NCBI GenBank assembly: GCA_950097015.1 | Contig: CATNEN010000031.1 | Location: 1,488,001-1,552,000 of the forward strand | Direction: 5' to 3' | Source of the DNA: Macrostomum hystrix | Taxonomy: Eukaryota; Animalia; Platyhelminthes | Length of the DNA stretch: 64,000 nucleotides | Part shown: one piece after another, positions 16,460 through 44,556 of the stretch | Layout of the letters: every line of letters begins with the position of its first letter | How positions within the stretch are numbered: position 1 is the first letter of the stretch | Translations under genes and position numbers: made by a program | The notes under the pieces: model-generated | The model's database searches: none | What the model was told of the DNA's origin: nothing | What the model saw: only the letters and a program-made list of their open reading frames with translations

Positions 16460-16971
16460 ATTCTCAGCCGTGGCCATTGAGATGCTGCGCGAGCAGGAGG
16501 ACCGCGACCTTCATCCGTACGGCCGGGGCGGCAGATTCGAAGGCGTGCTGTACTCTCGCCGGGTCAAGGTGCAGGTCGATCACGCCAAATTCCTCGCCTG
16601 GATTGTGTTCGCCGGATTCATACTGCTCACCTCCGGTGCCATTATCTTCCTGGCAGGTGAGATACTCGCGGCTTGCAGAACTAATAAACTAACAATAACC
16701 GTATAGCCGATCAGGGCAGTCTTTGACGGAAGGCTTGGTCTGCAGCTTAAGCTCATCAAGGCCAATCTTCAAGACACAGTGCGAGTGTACACGTGTGTGC
16801 GTGTGTGCTCAGGAGTCAGCGAAATGGACATCATTGACTCCTCGCTGGCTGTTGACTGCCACCAAATGATAGCCATAGCTACGATCCGTTTCAGAGATGG
16901 AACGGCGGCAGAAGACGCAGCAGCAGTCTCCGCTTGCGACGGCGGCGACAAATGGCAGCGGCGCCACGTAG
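16460..16971 (+). CDS. Last two exons (16460-16656, 16895-16971) of a membrane protein, possibly claudin/tetraspan-like
   Basis: FSAVAIEMLREQEDRDLHPYGRGGRFEGVLYSRRVKVQVDHAKFLAWIVFAGFILLTSGAIIFLA splices in phase 1 to EMERRQKTQQQSPLATAATNGSGAT*. There is a clear C-terminal TM helix and a short tail. Upstream exons were not located. Confidence 0.5.
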
Positions 16972-17048
16972 CTGATCTGACACACCTGGCAGACTTTTCA
17001 TCCGTACACTGCGCATTCGGCTGGGTGTAAAAAAAGCTAACTGGGGCC

Positions 17049-18230
17049 GCAGCCCACCCCACAGATTAAGGTGATGACCCAACCCACCCCACAGATTCAG
17101 GTGATCACCCAGCCCACCCCATAGATTCAGGTGATCGCCCAACCCACCCCACAGATTCAGGTGATGACCCACCCGACCCCACAGATTCAGGTCATCACCC
17201 AGCCTACCCCACAGATTCAGGTGATCACCCAACCCACCCCACAGATTCAGGTGATGACCCAGCCCACCCCACAGATTCAGGTGATCACCCAGCCTACCCC
17301 ACAGATTCAGGTGATCACCCAGCCTACCCCACAGATTCAGGTGATCACACAGCCCACCCCACAGATTCAGGTGATCACACAGCCCACCCCACAGATTCAG
17401 GTGATCACCCAACCCACCCCACAGATTCAGGTGATGACCCAGCCCACCCCACAGATTCAGGTGATCACCCAGCCTACCCCACAGTTTCAGGTGATCACCC
17501 AGCCTACCCCACAGATTCAGGTGATCACACAGCCCACCCCACAGATTCAGGTGATCACACAGCCCACCCCACAGATTCAGGTGATCACCCAGCCCACCCC
17601 ACAGATTCAGGTGATGACCCAGCCCACCCCACAGATTCAGGTGATCACCCAGCCTACCCCACAGATTCAGGTGATCACACAGCCCACCCCACAGATTCAG
17701 GTGATCACACAGCCCACCCCACAGATTCAGGTGATCACCCAGCCCACCCCACAGATTCAGGTGATGACCCAGCCCACCCCACAGATTCAGGTGATCACCC
17801 AGCCTACCCCACAGATTCAGGTGATCACACAGCCCACCCCACAGATTCAGGTGATCACCCAACCCACCCCACAGATTCAGGTGATCACCCAGCCCACCCC
17901 ATAGATTCAGGTGATCGCCCAACCCACCCCACAGATTCAGGTGATCACCCAGCCCACCCCACAGATTCAGGTGATGACCCAGCCCACCCCACAGATTCAG
18001 GTGATCACCCAGCCTACCCCACAGATTCAGGTGATCACCCAGCCTACCCCACAGATTCAGGTGATCACCCAGCCCACCCCACAGATTCAGGTGATCACAC
18101 AGCCCACCCCACAGATTCAGGTGATCACACAGCCCACCCCACAGATTCAGGTGATCACCCAGCCCACCCCACAGATTCAGGTGATCACACAGCCCACCCC
18201 ACAGATTCAGGTGATCACCAAGCCTACCTA
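17049..18230. repeat. 30-bp minisatellite, ~39 copies
   Basis: Unit CAGCCCACCCCACAGATTCAGGTGATCACC in tandem. Confidence 0.97.
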
Positions 18231-18967
18231 ACAGGCTATCACTGCCCACATAAACTACAAGACATGCTCTTACTAAAATCCCATTCCCATATTTTACAAG
18301 CTTTCGAGAAAGTATTTTTAGAATCAAGTATTTGATCTCGTTGATACTGTATAATGCATGCATCGAATCATTTTGCCGATTGAATTTTTTTATTTCTTCA
18401 CTGCCAACAAGCTACTTACAGTAGCGGTGGAAGAAACTGATTGCAAAAATGCAAATCTACTCATTTGATGCGTTGAGCTTCTCAATGATTCCCAAAGAAA
18501 CAATAATAGTATTTTCTTGAAACTGATTTTACTCTGTGCTTCACAGTCAACAAAGCATAAGCATTTGTGTCGGACTGAATAAATGTTCTGCAAATGTTAA
18601 ACAATAAAAAAGTATTGTGCTGTGTTTGATTAACGATTCGGGGCAACAGTGCTTACATAACAATATGCTTTGACAGGAAATGCGAGTCACTTCCCTCGGA
18701 TAGGGAGCAAACTGTATTGTTTATTATAATTGTCCTGTGTGAAGAAGTCGAGAGAACTTATGACCACTATAGTAACTAAGCACCAGCATAGTGGGAATAA
18801 TGTGGATGGTCACAAAAATTACATAGGTGGTAGTCAAGGGAATGGGCAATTCCTGAAACATTTCAATGAAGAAAACGTAATTAATACGAGCGTATTTAAG
18901 CGGATAATATAATAGCGCTTAACATAAAAAATTTAAAGTAAAAGCTTAACTTTATGGCAATCACCAT

Positions 18968-27383: not shown

Positions 27384-28761
27384 ATTTATATAGCCTAGGC
27401 ATAAGCCTAGATATAAAAAGCTAAGAATTTAAGTCCCAACCAGTCCAGTGTACATATTAATAAACTACACTAGTTATCTTCGACTTCCGAAATGCTAATT
27501 TAAGTTCAAAGATGCTTGGTTCCTTACGAAAATTTAAATAGGTTCTACTAGAAATTTAGTAAATGCTAAGGGGTGGTTGAGTCGTGATGGGACGATTTGC
27601 AAATTCCTGGAAATAAATTAGAGCAGTATAACTATGCAGCTCGTTCAAAATATTTCGATAATATGCTATTTGAAGGTACTACGAGGTAGTAATTTAGTAT
27701 TAAATATTTTTTAGTACTTAGATTAGGAGTCATTAGAATTTTTTTAAAGGGAGAGCCATGAGTGATAACTAGAAAGAGGCTCACGAAGTACAAAAACAAG
27801 ATAGCTCAGTTAAAATGTCATTTTGCTGCGCTTCGGATTTCTGACCGAGCGTTTGCGAGTTCCAATCTGAGCCTAAATGAAAAAATCGTGTATTTTGCTA
27901 GGCACGTAATCCTCCGATCGCACTAGCTCACTCAGCTTATCGAGAAATAGGCAGCTTTAATTTTTGGGTAGCAATTGGGGAGAACTTCAGCTAGCCCATA
28001 TGGACGACTGAACAACATTTGGTGCAAACAATTGCTGAACTTTTAGTGCTCTCTATTTTGTGACGTATCCGCTCGATTTCATCTAGTTAAGTAAAGCGAA
28101 ATTTTGCGTAGGCGGCAGTGCCCGACTGAACCGATTTACACAGATTATAAAGCTTCAATCATTTTCTAATATAGCTACATGTATAGCCAAGGACTACTAG
28201 TAGTTAGCTACTACTTTAATTCGGTAGTCCTTGTGTATAGCCTGCTAAAGTACTACACCTTGCGATGCTATATCTTACCTTATGATCATTCCTTCAAACT
28301 CAGAACGCAGCGTCTCCTTTTTCTATAAAGGAGAAATTCGACTTAGTAGGAAAGCGAATAATTGTGACGTAATACTCAACTACCACAACGGTCCCCATTG
28401 AACAAGAAGTACACAGGCTCTTGTTTTCGCCTATTGTAGATTTGCAACAGTCGGTATTTCGGCAAGTACGCTCAAAAAACCGCTGAATATTAAAACGATT
28501 AACACGAGATTTAATTTCTCTCCATGACTGTAAAATGTTTGCAGCAGGCGTTGACTGCTATTCTGGACAGAAAAAAATTACCTGATCAGTTTGATAAAGT
28601 TCTCTCGTCCGCATATTAAGTTACTCTGGAGCAGAGTTGAATTGAATTTGTCCGAAAGGGATGCTGCTACCATGGTAAGTTTTTTAATCGTCCTGAATAA
28701 GTTCAGAGACACAAAATAAGTTTTGGATTCTTGAGGTCAGAAAAGTTCTCATTTCACTTTT

Positions 28762-30068
28762 TCAGTCATAAAAGCCTTCATTCCAAGACTCCACATTCTT
28801 CTTTCCACGAAATCGCATGGTCGATCCCAGGTTCTTCTTTCCACGAAATCGCATGGTCGATCCCAGGTTCTTCTTTCCACGAAATCGCATGGTCGATCCC
28901 AGGTTCTTCTTTCCACGAAATCGCATGGTAGATCCCAGGTTCTTCTTTCCACGAAATCGCATGGTAGATCCCAGGTTCTTCTTTCCACGAAATCGCATCG
29001 CCGATCCCATGTTCTTCTTTCCACGAAATCGGAAAGCAGATCCCATGTGTCGCTTCGACGTAACAAAGTCATCATCCTCAGGCAGGTATTTGTGGTATTC
29101 GTCGACTCCGTAGATCGGATAGTACTCATCAAACTCGGTAGCCTAGTCACAAATGAAATGAGGAATAACGTTAGCAAACTGACTTGATTAACAGTAGATA
29201 GACCACGCTATTTCCCCCTGGGGAAAGACAACGGAGGGGATTTCAAATACACCCACTGCCTACTTCACGTTAGCTCCCAAACCGAATGACCGATTTTCGT
29301 CAAAGTTCACCATGGACATCAAAATTTCCCACCCTTACGATGAACTAACTTTCAAAGCATCGTCGAGATATTCAGCGATTTTTGTCAAAGAGTCTGACTG
29401 ATTCAAAAATGGTTAAATATTTTAGGAGAAACAGAAAAAAGAATAAAATATGGGCATTTGAAATATCCACGAGGCCTTTCTACTGATAAAGAGACCAATT
29501 CGGACTGTATTTGCAAGAGGTACTTCCAAAACTATCTGGCTACCACAGGCCCCTTACTAAGTTACTTATAGACAAACCCTCTGTTTAGAAGAGTAAATAC
29601 AAACTTGTATACAAATGATTTTTCATACATGGATTTATTTAGAATTGAATAGAATTTCTCAGAAATCATATTCCCATTTCATTGAGCTTATTATCTTACA
29701 TCAAGCTCCGGCATTCAGCATAGATAAAGAAGAAGCTGAGAACAAAAAATCCTTTTTGCTGATAGAGAGAACCAAGAGCTATAAATTGCAGTTATTTTGT
29801 AGGCTTTGCCTGCGGGCCAGCAGTTGTCTGCGAGGTTAATAAAACAAAATTCCCAACATTGATTGCTGTCCCGTCTTCCGCTTCTCTGCATTTGCGCATA
29901 AATCAAATCCTTCGCCAAGGGGATTACTGCATGGGCAGGCATCCATAAGCAAGGTCCCAAGAAATGGAGGCTCACCTCCTCCGGGGCGCCGCAGTCGGAA
30001 GCCGGGAGCAGGCTGAGGCAGCAGACGATTAGGAGCGGGCCGGCAATCTCCAGCAGCTTGAGAGACAT
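28762..30068 (-). CDS. Secreted neuropeptide precursor (RFR-amide peptides), 2 exons (30068-29976, 29142-28762), ~157 aa
   Basis: Exon 1 is the signal-peptide-like MSLKLLEIAGPLLIVCCLSLLPASDCGAPEE ending GAG|GTGAGC. Exon 2 follows TAG|GCT in phase 0: ATEFDEYYPIYGVDEYHKYLPEDDDFVTS-KR-HMGSAFRFRG-KK-NMGSAMRFRG-KK-(NLGSTMRFRG-KK)x5-NVESWNEGFYD*. Confidence 0.88.
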
Positions 30069-30647
30069 TTTCTTCTTCGCTGTGATGTCACTGCCAATGT
30101 GGGAGGCCCAGGAAGTCTTTATCGTTGGGCAGCATAAATTTTCCAGCTTTTTCTACCTTTCTGTCGTTTATAAAGTCAGATTCATTCGCATTTATACTTT
30201 ATATACTTTAAAACGGTTTCATAGATACTGATGCTTCAAAGGGCATAAAAATTGCTTCATAGCAACCAGGAAGAATATTGTGCCACAAGTCTACTAAATA
30301 GCATCATACTTTTGGATAAACAAAGACTTTTAAACTGCTTTTGTAGCTCATGCGAGTAGATCATAAGAGTAATCATCAATGGATAAAAAGAGTATTCAAA
30401 AAGGATATGTACACGTGCAGGTATTATTTGTAAAACAATAAGCTAATTAAATCACTCACGGTTTAATATAGTTTTGTCTTCGGTTTTATTTGCGCCGATA
30501 AAAGACCGTAAAACTCAAAAAAGGTGCCTTAACGGACTCTGTGCCGCTGCGTGTGGGTCGGAGCAAGCTCACACATTTATTCTTCTTCTCATCTCTGTGC
30601 CGCCAGCAGCCAATCAGATGGGATGCTGCAGATGCCACTGGAAGAAA

Positions 30648-31160
30648 AATCACACTCCTGGTATCTGACTGATGGAATCACACTCCTGGTATCTGACTGA
30701 TGGAATCACACTCCTGGTATCTGACTGATGGAATCACACTCCTGGTATCTGACTGATGGAATCACACTCCTGGCATCTAACTGATGGAATCACACTCCTG
30801 GTATCTGACTGATGGAATCACACTCCTGGCATCTAACTGATGGAATCACACTCCTGGTATCTGACTGATGGAATCACACTCCTGGTATCTGACTGATGGA
30901 ATCACACTCCTGGTATCTGACTGATGGAATCACACTCCTGGTATCTGACTGATGGAATCACACTCCTGGTATCTGACTGATGGAATCACACTCCTGGTAT
31001 CTGACTGATGGAATCACACTCCTGGTATCTGACTGATGGAATCACACTCCTGGTATCTGACTGATGGAATCACACTCCTGGTATCTGACTGATGGAATCA
31101 CACTCCTGGTATCTGACTGATGGAATCACACTCCTGGTATCTGACTGATGGAATCACACT
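30648..31160. repeat. 28-bp minisatellite, ~18 copies
   Basis: Unit GGAATCACACTCCTGGTATCTGACTGAT. Confidence 0.96.
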
Positions 31161-31852
31161 ACGTGTTGTCACTATTCGATACCAATGTCAATTTTCATCC
31201 CATCTACGTTGTCGGTGCTTATCAGCCCTCAGTGGTCATAAAATCACTGGGTGGCTCGTACTATCGTGTTTTCAAATATATTCGCCAAAGTGGAAAAAAT
31301 GTTCTACCCTATATGTAAACAGAAATGGCAGAGGTATATTCACGCCTTATACTAAAAATATTTTTTCCTTTCAGCAAAACTAATTTCGGTTCTGTCTCAG
31401 ATGACACTCTCCAGTATAGGTGAAGTTGGTTGTTGGGTGTGAAACCAATTATCTGAATAGAAAGCGAACTAGATTACTGGCTGCGGGAGTGACATCAACT
31501 CTGCACTTTCTTGGAATGAGTTTTCATTTCCTCAGCGAGGATACTGATCAGTTAGTCGCCCAATGGCCGACGTGAGACCACTGCAGTAGATGATCCATCA
31601 AGTTCGAATATTCATTTTGAGTTTCTCTTTCTAAAATATCAGATTGGAAATGTCGCATCGGATGCTCAGAGGGGAGAAATTAGAAAAGAACTCGACTTCT
31701 CCTAGCCCATAAATCAATCAAATTGCGAAAGATAATCGAGATAATATTTTTGCTGTTTGGTGAGACTTGCATCTACATGAGGTGAGATTGGAGTTGCTGT
31801 GCTCAAATACTAAATCAATAAATTCTACTGCAAAGGATTTTCGCCACCTGTA

Positions 31853-43159: not shown

Positions 43160-44556
43160 TTTGCAGCTTTTGTTGCGAGCGGGGGCGCGTTTATTTGAGG
43201 CTCTTGGGCTGTCTTCCTCTGGCTGTCTAGACCATGAACTTAGCTTTAAAGCGGCCATGGCATAGACGCATGTGCAATGCGGAGTGGATAGGCTGATTAA
43301 CAGAGTGAGAGAGGCGCAACTGTGAGGCTTGTTTTCACGGAGGGCGTATAGGTTAGAGAGCCCACAGCCAGTAGCAGGCGGTAGAGCAGTTCGCAGCAGT
43401 CTACGAACATAGAATGTACACAAACGGTTTTCCGACCTGACATTTTTTTAATAAGACATTTGTTTTGACTGCCAAAGTATTTAATGGTGTTTACGAGTGT
43501 CTTGACGAGTGTCCTGTTTAGAAGTATCTTAAACGGGGCAGAGTAGAAATCGCGTCACGCATTATTGGATGGACGCACTTCTTCAGGAATAAAAGCAATT
43601 CGTACATGAAATTATACGGTTAGAAACAGTTCGTCAATCTTGAAAAAATAATTTTTCTACTCCATATAGCTTTTGCCTTTTGTTTTATTTTAGGAAAATC
43701 TGTCTGACGCCAATATGCCACAGACCATTGTCAAATAATCTAAATACTATGTGTTTTATTACACAGCCTTCAGAGTACGCAGCAGTACGCAGCCTTCAGA
43801 TGCGCCGAACAATAGCTGCGGCTGCGATGTCGGCTGCACATCTGATCTAATTGGGGTATTTTTTTATAAACAATTATTGATTTATCAACGCTCAAGCGGT
43901 TGTTAAACGTTTTTATTATCATTCAACTCAAATTTAATGCAACGACAATATGCAGATTTTGTCACTCTTGATGCTGATTCCTAGTGACCGCAGTCGGCAA
44001 TTTTAAGTTGGATTTTACCTTCGTGAGATTCAGAAAGTCCTGACCAGCCCAATTGCGAATGTCATCGTTGAAAACAAATTGACGAAAGATGGAAGTGTTC
44101 ATGAAAGTTAAAAGTCAAAAAAAGCTAAGAAAATAAAAAAAACTAAACATTTCGGTTGTCACGCTGAAATTGATTGCACAACGAACTCTAGAACTCATGT
44201 ACAACCACGTGTGTTGCCCTCCGAATTGGGTCCTGATGTTGTTTATTAAAATCGAGAGTTCATTTTGCTGCGATGCGAATTAGTATGGCGAACAGTACGC
44301 CCTTAATGGTTATGGAATCTAAGTATTGCAACTATTGTACAAATATAATCCATTGATCTATTTGCAGAGTGATTTAACAGATAACGACAATTGATTTCTA
44401 CTTTCGTCCTTCTTGGTATCAGGATGCCAAGGCGAACAATGAAATCACACTGATTTCGAGTTTAATTAAAAGCCTGTTTTATTGAAAACATAATTAGAGC
44501 GAGTCAACAGTCTCATTGGGTCAAAGTCCCATCGAGTCTACTTCTTAAGTGGCTAA

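Follow-up and report, generated by a model that had tools for sequence, protein, structure and literature searches.

A spliced and expressed Macrostomum hystrix gene for a predicted secretory preprohormone, probably a flatworm member of the HIGA (NPLP1-like) family of spiralian neuropeptides

HIGA neuropeptides are known from annelids and ribbon worms. The Platynereis dumerilii HIGA proneuropeptide (KF515947) was described by Conzelmann et al. 2013 (PMC3890597), with units including KR-HIGAAMRLRPSKFED and KR-HLGAAMRLVQPK and peptides detected by mass spectrometry; nemertean precursors contain units such as HLGSIMR-GKK, HLGSAMRL-GKK, HLGSALRMRQ-GKR and NLGSAMRWKG-GKR (Thiel et al. 2021, PMC8557429), whose ends vary between GKK, GKR and SKK. 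In arthropods, the crustacean HIGSLYRamide derives from NPLP1 (neuropeptide-like precursor 1; Veenstra 2016, PMC4888303), and a partial crab NPLP1 precursor of 326 aa holds 15 peptides (PMC4655400). In the part of the literature that we searched, we found no record of HIGA in flatworms and nothing relevant on RFRamide/MRFRamide-type peptides or on Mlig010852. Here we describe a gene of Macrostomum hystrix, located in a 64-kb stretch of contig CATNEN010000031.1 (hereafter the window), which is expressed and encodes a predicted secretory preprohormone of 157 aa that we assign, with a probability of about 0.7, to the HIGA family. A preliminary description made from the DNA letters had read the locus as a neuropeptide precursor and had not recognized it as a described flatworm family; the precursor reading gains from the transcripts, the selection in the peptide frame and the database neighbours presented below, and no flatworm record was found, but the family itself is not new and the window gene would be an additional member of it.

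The gene lies on the minus strand and comprises a non-coding 5' exon, an exon encoding the putative signal peptide and an exon carrying a 36-bp repeat (Table 1). Both introns are of the GT..AG type, and their exact joins occur in intron-less transcript contigs assembled from public runs (n = 7, two studies). The 29976|29142 junction, for which RNA-seq confirmation had been suggested, is present in contigs of six of the seven runs (X1, X3, X4, X5, X6 and X7), coverage in the seventh being limited to the 3' part of the gene, and the 30090|30460 junction is present in contigs of X3, X4, X6 and X7. Furthermore, the introns are at zero depth in the runs whose contigs carry the splice joints. The gene is transcribed and spliced, and its word depth is fairly high in whole-animal transcriptomes (about 86-315 in X4-X7). 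The preliminary model of two coding exons separated by a phase-0 intron agrees with these transcripts, the leader and repeat exons having been correctly placed and the non-coding 5' exon overlooked. The end of the latter at 30533 is a minimum, contigs extending to 30531-30533, and a trans-spliced leader was rejected as explanation of the loose contig 5' end, which is an ordinary upstream exon. On the 3' side, an ATTAAA lies at 28515-28510, 35 nt upstream of the contig end, and the contigs of X4, X6 and X7 all stop at 28475. Intron 1 holds a multi-copy repeat element (about 29196-29411), outside which it is at zero depth in the runs that carry its joint. Within the 64-kb window, neither a second gene copy nor M. 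lignano-type C-terminal peptides were found elsewhere, and Rfam and tRNA scans were empty.

Table 1. Features of the preprohormone gene (window coordinates) and its Macrostomum lignano homologues.
Feature	Position or identifier	Strand	Details
Non-coding 5' exon	30460..30533	-	loose 5' end of mRNA contigs maps uniquely there; without ATG
Intron 0, 369 nt	30091..30459	-	GT 30459-30458, AG 30092-30091; contig joint skipping 369 bases, CT..AC on + strand
Exon 1	29976..30090	-	22 nt 5' UTR, then start codon 30068-30066 and 31-codon leader; contigs cover 29975-30090
Intron 1, 833 nt, phase 0	29143..29975	-	GT donor 29975-29974, AG acceptor 29144-29143
Exon 2	28475..29142	-	CDS 29142-28762 (126 codons + TGA), then 3' UTR of ~287 nt
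Acidic Tyr-rich spacer	29142-29056, then predicted Lys-Arg cleavage site 29055-29050	-	
Seven 36-nt units, nonapeptide + Gly-Lys-Lys each	28798..29049	-	HMGSAFRFR, NMGSAMRFR, 5 x NLGSTMRFR
Decayed eighth unit	28762..28797	-	C-terminal peptide NVESWNEGFYD + stop; AAT GTG GAG TCT vs AAC CTG GGA TCG
M. lignano homologues	BOX15_Mlig010852g1, Mlig031380g1, Mlig018182g1		PAA81134.1, PAA53821.1, PAA69001.1

In the 157-aa product, a hydrophobic leader and an acidic spacer precede a Lys-Arg and seven units of the form x[M/L]GS[A/T][F/M]RFR-Gly-Lys-Lys. The Met-initiated leader of 31 aa (MSLKLLEIAGPLLIVCCLSLLPASDCGAPEE, window 29976-30068, minus strand) has a Lys at position 4, a hydrophobic core at residues 8-22 and small residues at 24-28, with Kyte-Doolittle means over nine residues of up to 3.1 (residues 8-16), as is typical of signal peptides, and it probably acts as one. 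Minus-strand translation of 28762-29142 yields the other 126 aa and the stop, in which the acidic spacer, the initial Lys-Arg and the 12-residue units each ending in Gly-Lys-Lys, all noted beforehand along with the upstream leader, are readily recognized. Tandem Repeats Finder returns the repeat at 28796-29031, with a period of 36, 6.6 copies and 97% matches. After the Lys-Arg come HMGSAFRFRGKK, NMGSAMRFRGKK, then NLGSTMRFRGKK five times and lastly NVESWNEGFYD, which can be loosely aligned to SYNLPYLADWYFD in the M. lignano homologues. The seven nonapeptides are set off by one KR and by a G-K-K after each of them, which is the generic layout of a preprohormone; a Pfam search gave no significant match. 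In such a precursor, the leader would take the protein into the ER, a prohormone convertase would cut after Lys-Arg and each Lys-Lys, a carboxypeptidase would strip the basic residues and the peptidylglycine alpha-amidating enzyme would amidate the C-terminus at the expense of the Gly thus exposed. Such processing would yield HMGSAFRFR-NH2, NMGSAMRFR-NH2 and five molecules of NLGSTMRFR-NH2, with calculated [M+H]+ of 1107.563, 1068.519 and 1080.573, together with the acidic C-terminal peptide NVESWNEGFYD (1359.549). All these steps, from removal of the leader to Lys-Lys processing and amidation, are predicted properties, as are expression in neurons and signalling.

Since a repeat whose period is divisible by 3 opens several frames, the open frame alone is no proof of coding, and the locus might be seen as a non-coding minisatellite in a transcribed region, open by chance. 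Such a reading does not account for an in-frame ATG and a hydrophobic leader, which the observed transcripts join to the repeat across a phase-0 intron. Furthermore, over a 90-codon block compared with the M. lignano locus L001, pS is 0.705 and pN 0.124 in the peptide frame, and this excess is absent from the other two frames; synonymous divergence is near saturation with the amino acids conserved, a sign that the peptide is under strong selection. Splicing, leader and cross-species selection together establish that the repeat is coding and under coding constraint, and the minisatellite reading is refuted by the frame-specific selection and the spliced transcripts. Within the repeat, the synonymous TCT/TCG difference at Ser remarked upon earlier separates units 3-4 from units 5-7. 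An allelic change, Val-Thr to Asp-Ala at 29064-29059 (variant at 29061-29063 in X1, X5, X6 and X7), is located in the spacer and not in the peptides.

The only database homologues are three unnamed "hypothetical proteins" of M. lignano, which, judged by their phmmer scores (E 1e-57, 57-64% identity), are true homologues. As in the window gene, a leader exon is followed by a phase-0 intron and the remainder is in a single exon; the leader is of the classical kind (MTRAALLMLLLCSALAVIAES) and the units, N-M-G-S-A-M-R-[F/L]-R-x-K-K, are of the same type. At 226-260 aa, the M. lignano proteins exceed the window product in length and carry further peptides at the C-terminus. We detected no synteny between their loci and the window, with which the flanks do not align, and the protein encoded in the window has no entry of its own among 5.8 billion database proteins. 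A phmmer search started from the window exon gave 209 matches, mostly unrelated low-complexity repeats; a Lingula protein (P0084) that was set aside bears the annotation pedal peptide 3 in Thiel et al.

Comparison with M. lignano also bears on which part of the peptide matters. The RFR-amide end, highlighted in the preliminary description, is predicted for the window peptides as stated there, but in many M. lignano units the Gly that would donate the amide is replaced by Ser, Ala or Phe, so that amidation is not a conserved requirement and this end probably does not define the peptides; the conserved element is instead the N-terminal core. As this core, [N/H/Y]-[L/I/M]-G-[S/A]-[A/T]-[M/F]-R-[F/L], is conserved across the family, it is probably the part recognized by the receptor. 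The Gly/Ser/Ala variation among Macrostomum copies offers a natural experiment on the importance of the C-terminal amide.

Neuropeptide families are usually assigned from a short motif together with precursor architecture. By this standard, the sequence that follows the cleavage site at once and opens each unit, [N/H/Y]-[L/M]-G-S-A-M-R-[F/L], agrees with Platynereis and nemertean HIGA, an assignment that rests on an 8-residue motif and architecture, is statistically weak and concerns a family picked after seeing the data. The window product and the HIGA proteins are multi-copy secretory precursors with units x-[L/I/M]-G-[S/A]-A-M-[R/N/K]-hydrophobic right after a dibasic site, and the HIGA unit start H/x-[L/I/M]-G-[S/A]-[A/L/I]-[M/L]-[R/N/K] is found in that position here. 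Scored with a position matrix tallied from 37 published HIGA unit starts, the window units reach 12.8, 18.5 and 15.4 bits, the commonest only 12.8, with values as high as 21.8 for units of M. lignano, against a background maximum of 4.2 bits among 1455 post-dibasic 8-mers from the rest of the window. Like the window units, those of nemertean HIGA are short, and many of them are amidated and have a GKK behind them. The Arg-amide ends, regarded at first as unusual, are not so within HIGA, where nemertean HLGSIMR-GKK provides a precedent. Multiple copies with variable, partly amidated C-termini are likewise a trait of HIGA that is found in Macrostomum (seven copies here; G, S, A or F after R[F/L]R in M. 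lignano), and Gly/Ser variation at the amidation position is common to Macrostomum and nemertean HIGA.

Several differences should be weighed against these likenesses. The first residue is Asn in 6 of the 7 window units and His once, versus His in HIGA; the window units abut without acidic spacers, whereas nemertean HIGA has acidic inter-unit spacers; the window precursor measures 157 aa, compared with 300 to over 800 aa; and the long, acidic, non-amidated tails of the Platynereis peptides are unlike the window peptides. The conserved N-terminal peptides of nemertean HIGA, of the HLGSLARHNWLP type (HLGSLARHNWLPKP...) and the YLGSLLRSG type (YLGSLLRSG.G...YPWW), are absent from the 157-aa protein; since the printed Platynereis HIGA sequence lacks them too, they are perhaps not diagnostic of the family.

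One competing identity would place the gene in the flatworm FRFamide (npp-4)/lophotrochozoan LFRFamide/sNPF group, as a derived form in which an Arg was inserted before the amidation Gly, turning FRF-amide into FRFR-amide. Those precursors are also multi-copy with a short G-S-x-F-R-F core: the unit 1 core, GSAFRF, resembles planarian Smed-npp-4 SSVFRFa, SVAFRFa and GSVFRYa (PMC2953531) as well as mollusc GSLFRFa and STLFRFa (PMC4208409), and one M. lignano unit ends in ...MRLRF-KR. However, the match covers 5-6 residues of one unit, the other units having Met for the Phe/Leu of that family, and its defining C-terminal RF/RY-amide is missing from every unit. The npp-4 and LFRFamide peptides lack an x-L-G extension, whereas in the window units RF is extended by an Arg and conservation lies at the N-terminus; the [N/H/Y]-[L/M]-G start, without counterpart there, is the hallmark of HIGA. 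Furthermore, sNPF/LFRFamide and HIGA are separate genes in nemerteans (PMC8557429 supplement), and we consider this identity unlikely. The C-terminus [L/F/V]-[F/A]-R-[F/Y]-amide of sNPF/LFRFamide/npp-4 is not found, the units reading R-F-R-G-K-K with the amide expected on Arg, and FMRFamide-type FLPs (x-[M/L]-R-F-amide) were set aside because, although M-R-F is present, an Arg precedes the Gly. The C-terminal motif of protostome tachykinin-related peptides is F-x-G-x-R-amide. The window C-terminus, [T/A]-[M/F]-R-F-R, has neither Phe at -5 nor Gly at -3, and this family was rejected as well.

Alternatively, the gene could belong to a Macrostomum-specific family, its resemblance to HIGA and NPLP1 being convergent, a matter of chance in an 8-residue motif. 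A sequence search of 1.84 billion representative proteins returned homologues from M. lignano only; the supplementary files of the planarian study that reported 51 prohormones (Collins 2010) contain none of the strings RHLG, RHIG, LGSA, IGSA, MGSA and LGAA; HIGA was chosen afterwards out of roughly 70 spiralian families; and the main window unit reaches only about 13 bits. Against this, the scores of the M. lignano units amount to 18-22 bits, and the motif keeps its register immediately behind the dibasic site; N, H and Y serve as alternative first residues in Macrostomum, nemertean HIGA and NPLP1 alike; and nemertean HIGA, too, has GKK sites and shows both G and S where the amide donor is expected. 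The M. lignano C-terminal HLGAAVRFGGERRWRYSWPNWY is, in addition, loosely like nemertean YLGSLLRSG.GTRKENYPWWK. On balance a family confined to Macrostomum seems to us improbable.

A precursor secreted by non-neural tissue (gland secretion, host defence or seminal product) would fit peptides that are short and cationic and the fairly high word depth reported above, but identically repeated nonapeptides with dibasic and amidation signals are typical of neuropeptides, and the relatives are neuropeptide precursors whose peptides were confirmed by mass spectrometry in Platynereis (PMC3890597). Moreover, a protein-language-model search with an M. lignano homologue (P0001) returned as nearest neighbours, without exception, multi-copy neuropeptide precursors (top score 0.93), and a non-neural role appears very unlikely.

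The locus adds a predicted neuropeptide gene that existing gene models lack. With the HIGA assignment, the orphan HIGA family would extend from annelids and nemerteans to flatworms. The likeness to crustacean HIGSLYRamide perceived from the DNA letters leads to arthropod NPLP1 (PMC4888303), with spiralian HIGA sharing the same N-terminal motif, and motif comparisons point to a link between the two. NPLP1 peptides such as NVGSLAR, HIGALAR, YLASLVR and HIGSLYR-NH2 start with [N/H/Y]-[I/L/V]-G-[S/T/A]-x-x-R like the window units, and their C-termini are variable and only some amidated. When set against the pattern [N/H/Y]-[I/L/V]-[G/A]-[S/T/A]-L-[A/V]-R, the window units fit at positions 1-4 and 7 and have T/A-M/F at 5-6, where NPLP1 has L-A. 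NPLP1 precursors are also large, with about 10-15 different peptides, versus near-identical tandem copies in the 157-aa window precursor. In Drosophila, an NPLP1 peptide is reported to signal via the membrane guanylate cyclase Gyc76C. From motif matches such as that between nemertean HLGSLARHNWLPKP and Tribolium HIGALARLGWLPTL we infer HIGA-NPLP1 orthology, which we did not find stated in the literature searched. We tentatively suggest, as a possibility that we hold to be somewhat doubtful, that HIGA and arthropod NPLP1 form one ancient protostome family with an N-terminal x-hydrophobic-G-S-x-x-R core, the short Arg-amides HIGSLYR-NH2, HLGSIMR-NH2 and NLGSTMRFR-NH2 representing the minimal active ligand. 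If the link is true, a "lineage-specific" peptide would become part of a protostome-wide signalling system, and a compact gene in the transformable, transparent genus Macrostomum would offer a tractable route to its receptor class and function. An NPLP1-type protein (P0091) matched the window exon by phmmer with an E of 5e-7, within a list full of low-complexity false positives, and matched the window by tblastn at 37% over 119 aa; scored with the HIGA matrix, the units of P0091 reach 12-14.5 bits.

Translation of the minus strand across the 36-bp repeat bears out the preliminary description of 12-residue units that end in Gly-Lys-Lys and follow a Lys-Arg. The exon 2 product runs from an acidic Tyr-rich spacer through Lys-Arg to seven units (HMGSAFRFR-GKK and NMGSAMRFR-GKK once each, NLGSTMRFR-GKK five times) and a decayed eighth, NVESWNEGFYD, directly followed by the stop. 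G-S and R-F-R-G-K-K are invariant across the seven, units 1 and 2 depart from the others at peptide positions 1, 2, 5 and 6, and the synonymous TCT/TCG (Ser) difference reported earlier is indeed, unit by unit, all that separates units 3-4 from units 5-7. In the leader, a single Lys is followed by a hydrophobic core, whose Kyte-Doolittle values reach 3.1, and by small residues close to the likely cleavage point. This predicted anatomy of leader, spacer, Lys-Arg and peptide-Gly-dibasic repeats is the textbook prohormone plan. Several further frames across the repeat are likewise open and, because its period is divisible by 3, an open frame alone is weak evidence of coding.

Logan contigs of public runs (X1 and X3 from one study, X4-X7 from another) were aligned to the gene region. 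Single contigs of X1, X3 and X4-X7 contain the joint 29141/29975, skipping 833 bases whose ends read CT..AC on the plus strand, that is GT..AG on the minus strand; X2 contigs cover the 3' part of the gene only. Depth in the same runs is zero over the remainder of intron 1 and over the DNA upstream and downstream, so the contigs represent assembled transcripts rather than genomic sequence. They show the gene to be genuine and expressed, with the 29976/29142 junction proposed from the genome joined in these intron-less contigs. The earlier two-exon model holds for the coding exons and their junction but missed a non-coding 5' exon: the contigs diverge from the genome again at 30090, their free end has a unique placement starting at 30460, and the joint 30090/30460 (369 bases skipped, GT..AG) is found in four runs. 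A trans-spliced leader at the 5' end of the contigs was ruled out, the sequence being an ordinary cis exon. The mRNA is roughly 860 nt long. An allelic or strain variant in the acidic spacer (Val-Thr to Asp-Ala) occurs in X1, X5, X6 and X7 and is absent from X4; X1 carries an additional synonymous change at 29065, and no variation within the peptides was seen in the contigs of public runs.

Coordinates of the precursor gene and of other elements (window positions unless a locus is named)
Feature	Position	Strand	Description
Non-coding 5' exon	30460 to at least 30533	minus	contig loose end and joint 30090/30460
Exon 1, coding part	30068-29976	minus	Met-initiated leader, 31 residues
Intron 1, phase 0	donor GT 29975-29974, acceptor AG 29144-29143	minus	
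Exon 2, coding part	29142-28762	minus	126 residues, open until stop (translation)
36-bp repeat	28796-29031		6.6 copies, 97% matches (Tandem Repeats Finder)
Variant allele	29061-29063	plus	TAA>CGT
Common 3' end of contigs	28475		three runs; ATTAAA 35 nt before
Multi-copy element	~29196-29411		within intron 1
28-bp minisatellite	30648-31170		~19 copies, 97% alike
65-bp element	43780-43844; L001 6162-6226; L002 10349-10413		~90% identical
ORF	16891-18363	minus	ATG-initiated, 490 aa

When 1.84 billion representative proteins were searched exhaustively with phmmer, a single convincing homologue emerged, the M. lignano hypothetical protein BOX15_Mlig010852g1 (E 1e-57), the other matches being mostly low-complexity repeats; two further M. 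lignano copies are Mlig031380g1 and Mlig018182g1. All three are unnamed and lack Pfam domains, and the window protein has no significant Pfam match. They share with the window gene the exon plan (Glu-ending leader exon, phase-0 intron, remainder in one exon) and units of the form N-M-G-S-A-M-R-[F/L]-R-x-K-K. In a gap-free 90-codon block, pS is 0.705 (synonymous sites nearly saturated) versus a pN of 0.124, a contrast whose direction is clear even though repeat units are non-independent observations; the other two frames give 0.33/0.24 and 0.08/0.30. The peptide in this frame is clearly what is conserved, under coding selection. Since the gene flanks fail to align, no synteny with the M. lignano loci was found and pS is high, the window gene is either that of a Macrostomum species that has diverged considerably from M. 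lignano or an old paralogue. The residue before Lys-Lys in M. lignano is Gly in some units only, otherwise Ser, Ala or Phe, so that the conserved element is the N-terminal and central part of the peptide and not the predicted RFR-amide end, formerly the headline feature, whose Gly stands in all seven units here but is inconstant there. A protein-language-model search with BOX15_Mlig010852g1 placed nearest to it only multi-copy neuropeptide precursors (prothoracicostatic peptide, 0.93, then allatostatin, tachykinin, PBAN, TRH and FLP-1).

As to the family, planarian npp-4 (SSVFRFa, GSVFRYa; PMC2953531) and the mollusc LFRFamides (GSLFRFa; PMC4208409) recall G-S-A-F-R-F, the core of unit 1, but their defining RF-/RY-amide is absent here, and the N-terminal extension of the window peptides is missing from them. 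FMRFamide-type and tachykinin-type motifs were ruled out on the C-terminus of the units, and a Lingula match (P0084, YGSVFRLPxGKR) has been annotated by Thiel et al. as pedal peptide 3 (PMC8557429). The spiralian HIGA proneuropeptides fit better. The Platynereis HIGA precursor is long and contains dozens of KR-H[I/L]GAAM[R/N]L... units, such as HIGAAMRLRPSKFED and HIGADMRFAE..., several peptides of which were detected by MS (Conzelmann et al. 2013, PMC3890597). Nemertean units are short and often amidated: HLGSIMR-GKK, in many copies in Cerebratulus, HLGSAMRL-GKK, HLGSAMNSRF-GKR, HLGSALRMRQ-GKR and NLGSAMRWKG-GKR, along with non-Gly variants such as HLGSAMKSRPS-KK (Thiel et al. 2021, PMC8557429). 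On a position matrix tallied from 37 published HIGA unit starts (8-mers), the window units score 12.8, 18.5 and 15.4 bits and those of M. lignano up to 21.8, against a maximum of 4.2 among the 1455 8-mers that follow dibasic sites in the remainder of the window; HIGA was chosen after the data were seen, and at 13 bits the commonest unit, taken alone, would not withstand correction. Because units reach 18-22 bits, start in the same register directly after the cleavage site, and share with nemerteans GKK usage and Gly/Ser variation at the amidation position, the window gene is likely (probability about 0.7) a HIGA family member.

HIGA was previously known from annelids or molluscs, according to Thiel et al. 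(2021), who found it only in nemerteans (PMC8557429). The window protein is absent from a 5.8-billion-protein collection, the supplementary files of a planarian study of 51 prohormones contain none of the HIGA-like motif strings searched, and the peptide strings occur in no open-access paper. The view that this is not a described flatworm family thus stands for the open-access flatworm literature, but the family itself is known, and we regard the gene as a probable flatworm addition to it.

The likeness to HIGSLYRamide, suggested at first from the sequence, is supported at the motif level. HIGSLYRamides derive from the arthropod precursor NPLP (Veenstra 2016, PMC4888303), NPLP1 peptides begin with NVGSLAR, YLASLVR, FLGSVAR or HIGALARLGWLP in the reference set of Thiel et al. 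(PMC8557429), and an NPLP1-type protein among the phmmer matches (P0091), whose peptide GVESLARNGELPGKR is comparable to Tribolium GIESLARNGELHNRR, has units of 12-14.5 bits on the HIGA matrix. HIGA may be the spiralian counterpart of NPLP1, perhaps one family with it, in view of the close resemblance between HLGSLARHNWLPKP..., with which nemertean HIGA precursors start, and Tribolium NPLP1 HIGALARLGWLPTL... (PMC8557429 supplement). No paper linking the two was found in the literature searched; this unification, while unproven, is the more interesting reading behind the gene.

Following established prohormone biochemistry, the precursor would enter the ER co-translationally and lose its leader, a convertase would cut after Lys-Arg and after every Lys-Lys, a carboxypeptidase would trim the basic residues, and the exposed Gly would become a C-terminal amide, yielding five NLGSTMRFR-NH2, one NMGSAMRFR-NH2 and one HMGSAFRFR-NH2. 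Lys-Lys cleavage is rarer than Lys-Arg cleavage in many animals; Lys-Lys between units is the rule in all Macrostomum copies, and such sites are common in nemertean HIGA (PMC8557429).

Other elements were also noted. The minisatellite lies upstream of the gene, ~115 bp from where the 5' end of the first exon maps, and shows no transcription in the contigs of public runs. Part of the intron 1 element (29251-29310) is common to many unrelated transcript contigs (X1, X3-X7) at 90-97% identity and high summed depth, and the element probably represents a fragment of a transposon or SINE-like sequence. For the 490-aa ORF, the 5.8-billion-protein collection yielded no homologue at E<=1e-10. Finally, the 65-bp element of the window, with no Rfam or tRNA match, recurs within a few kilobases of the M. 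lignano homologue genes at loci L001 and L002; it contains a short palindrome (cagatg...catctg) and may belong to a repeat family or be a conserved element.
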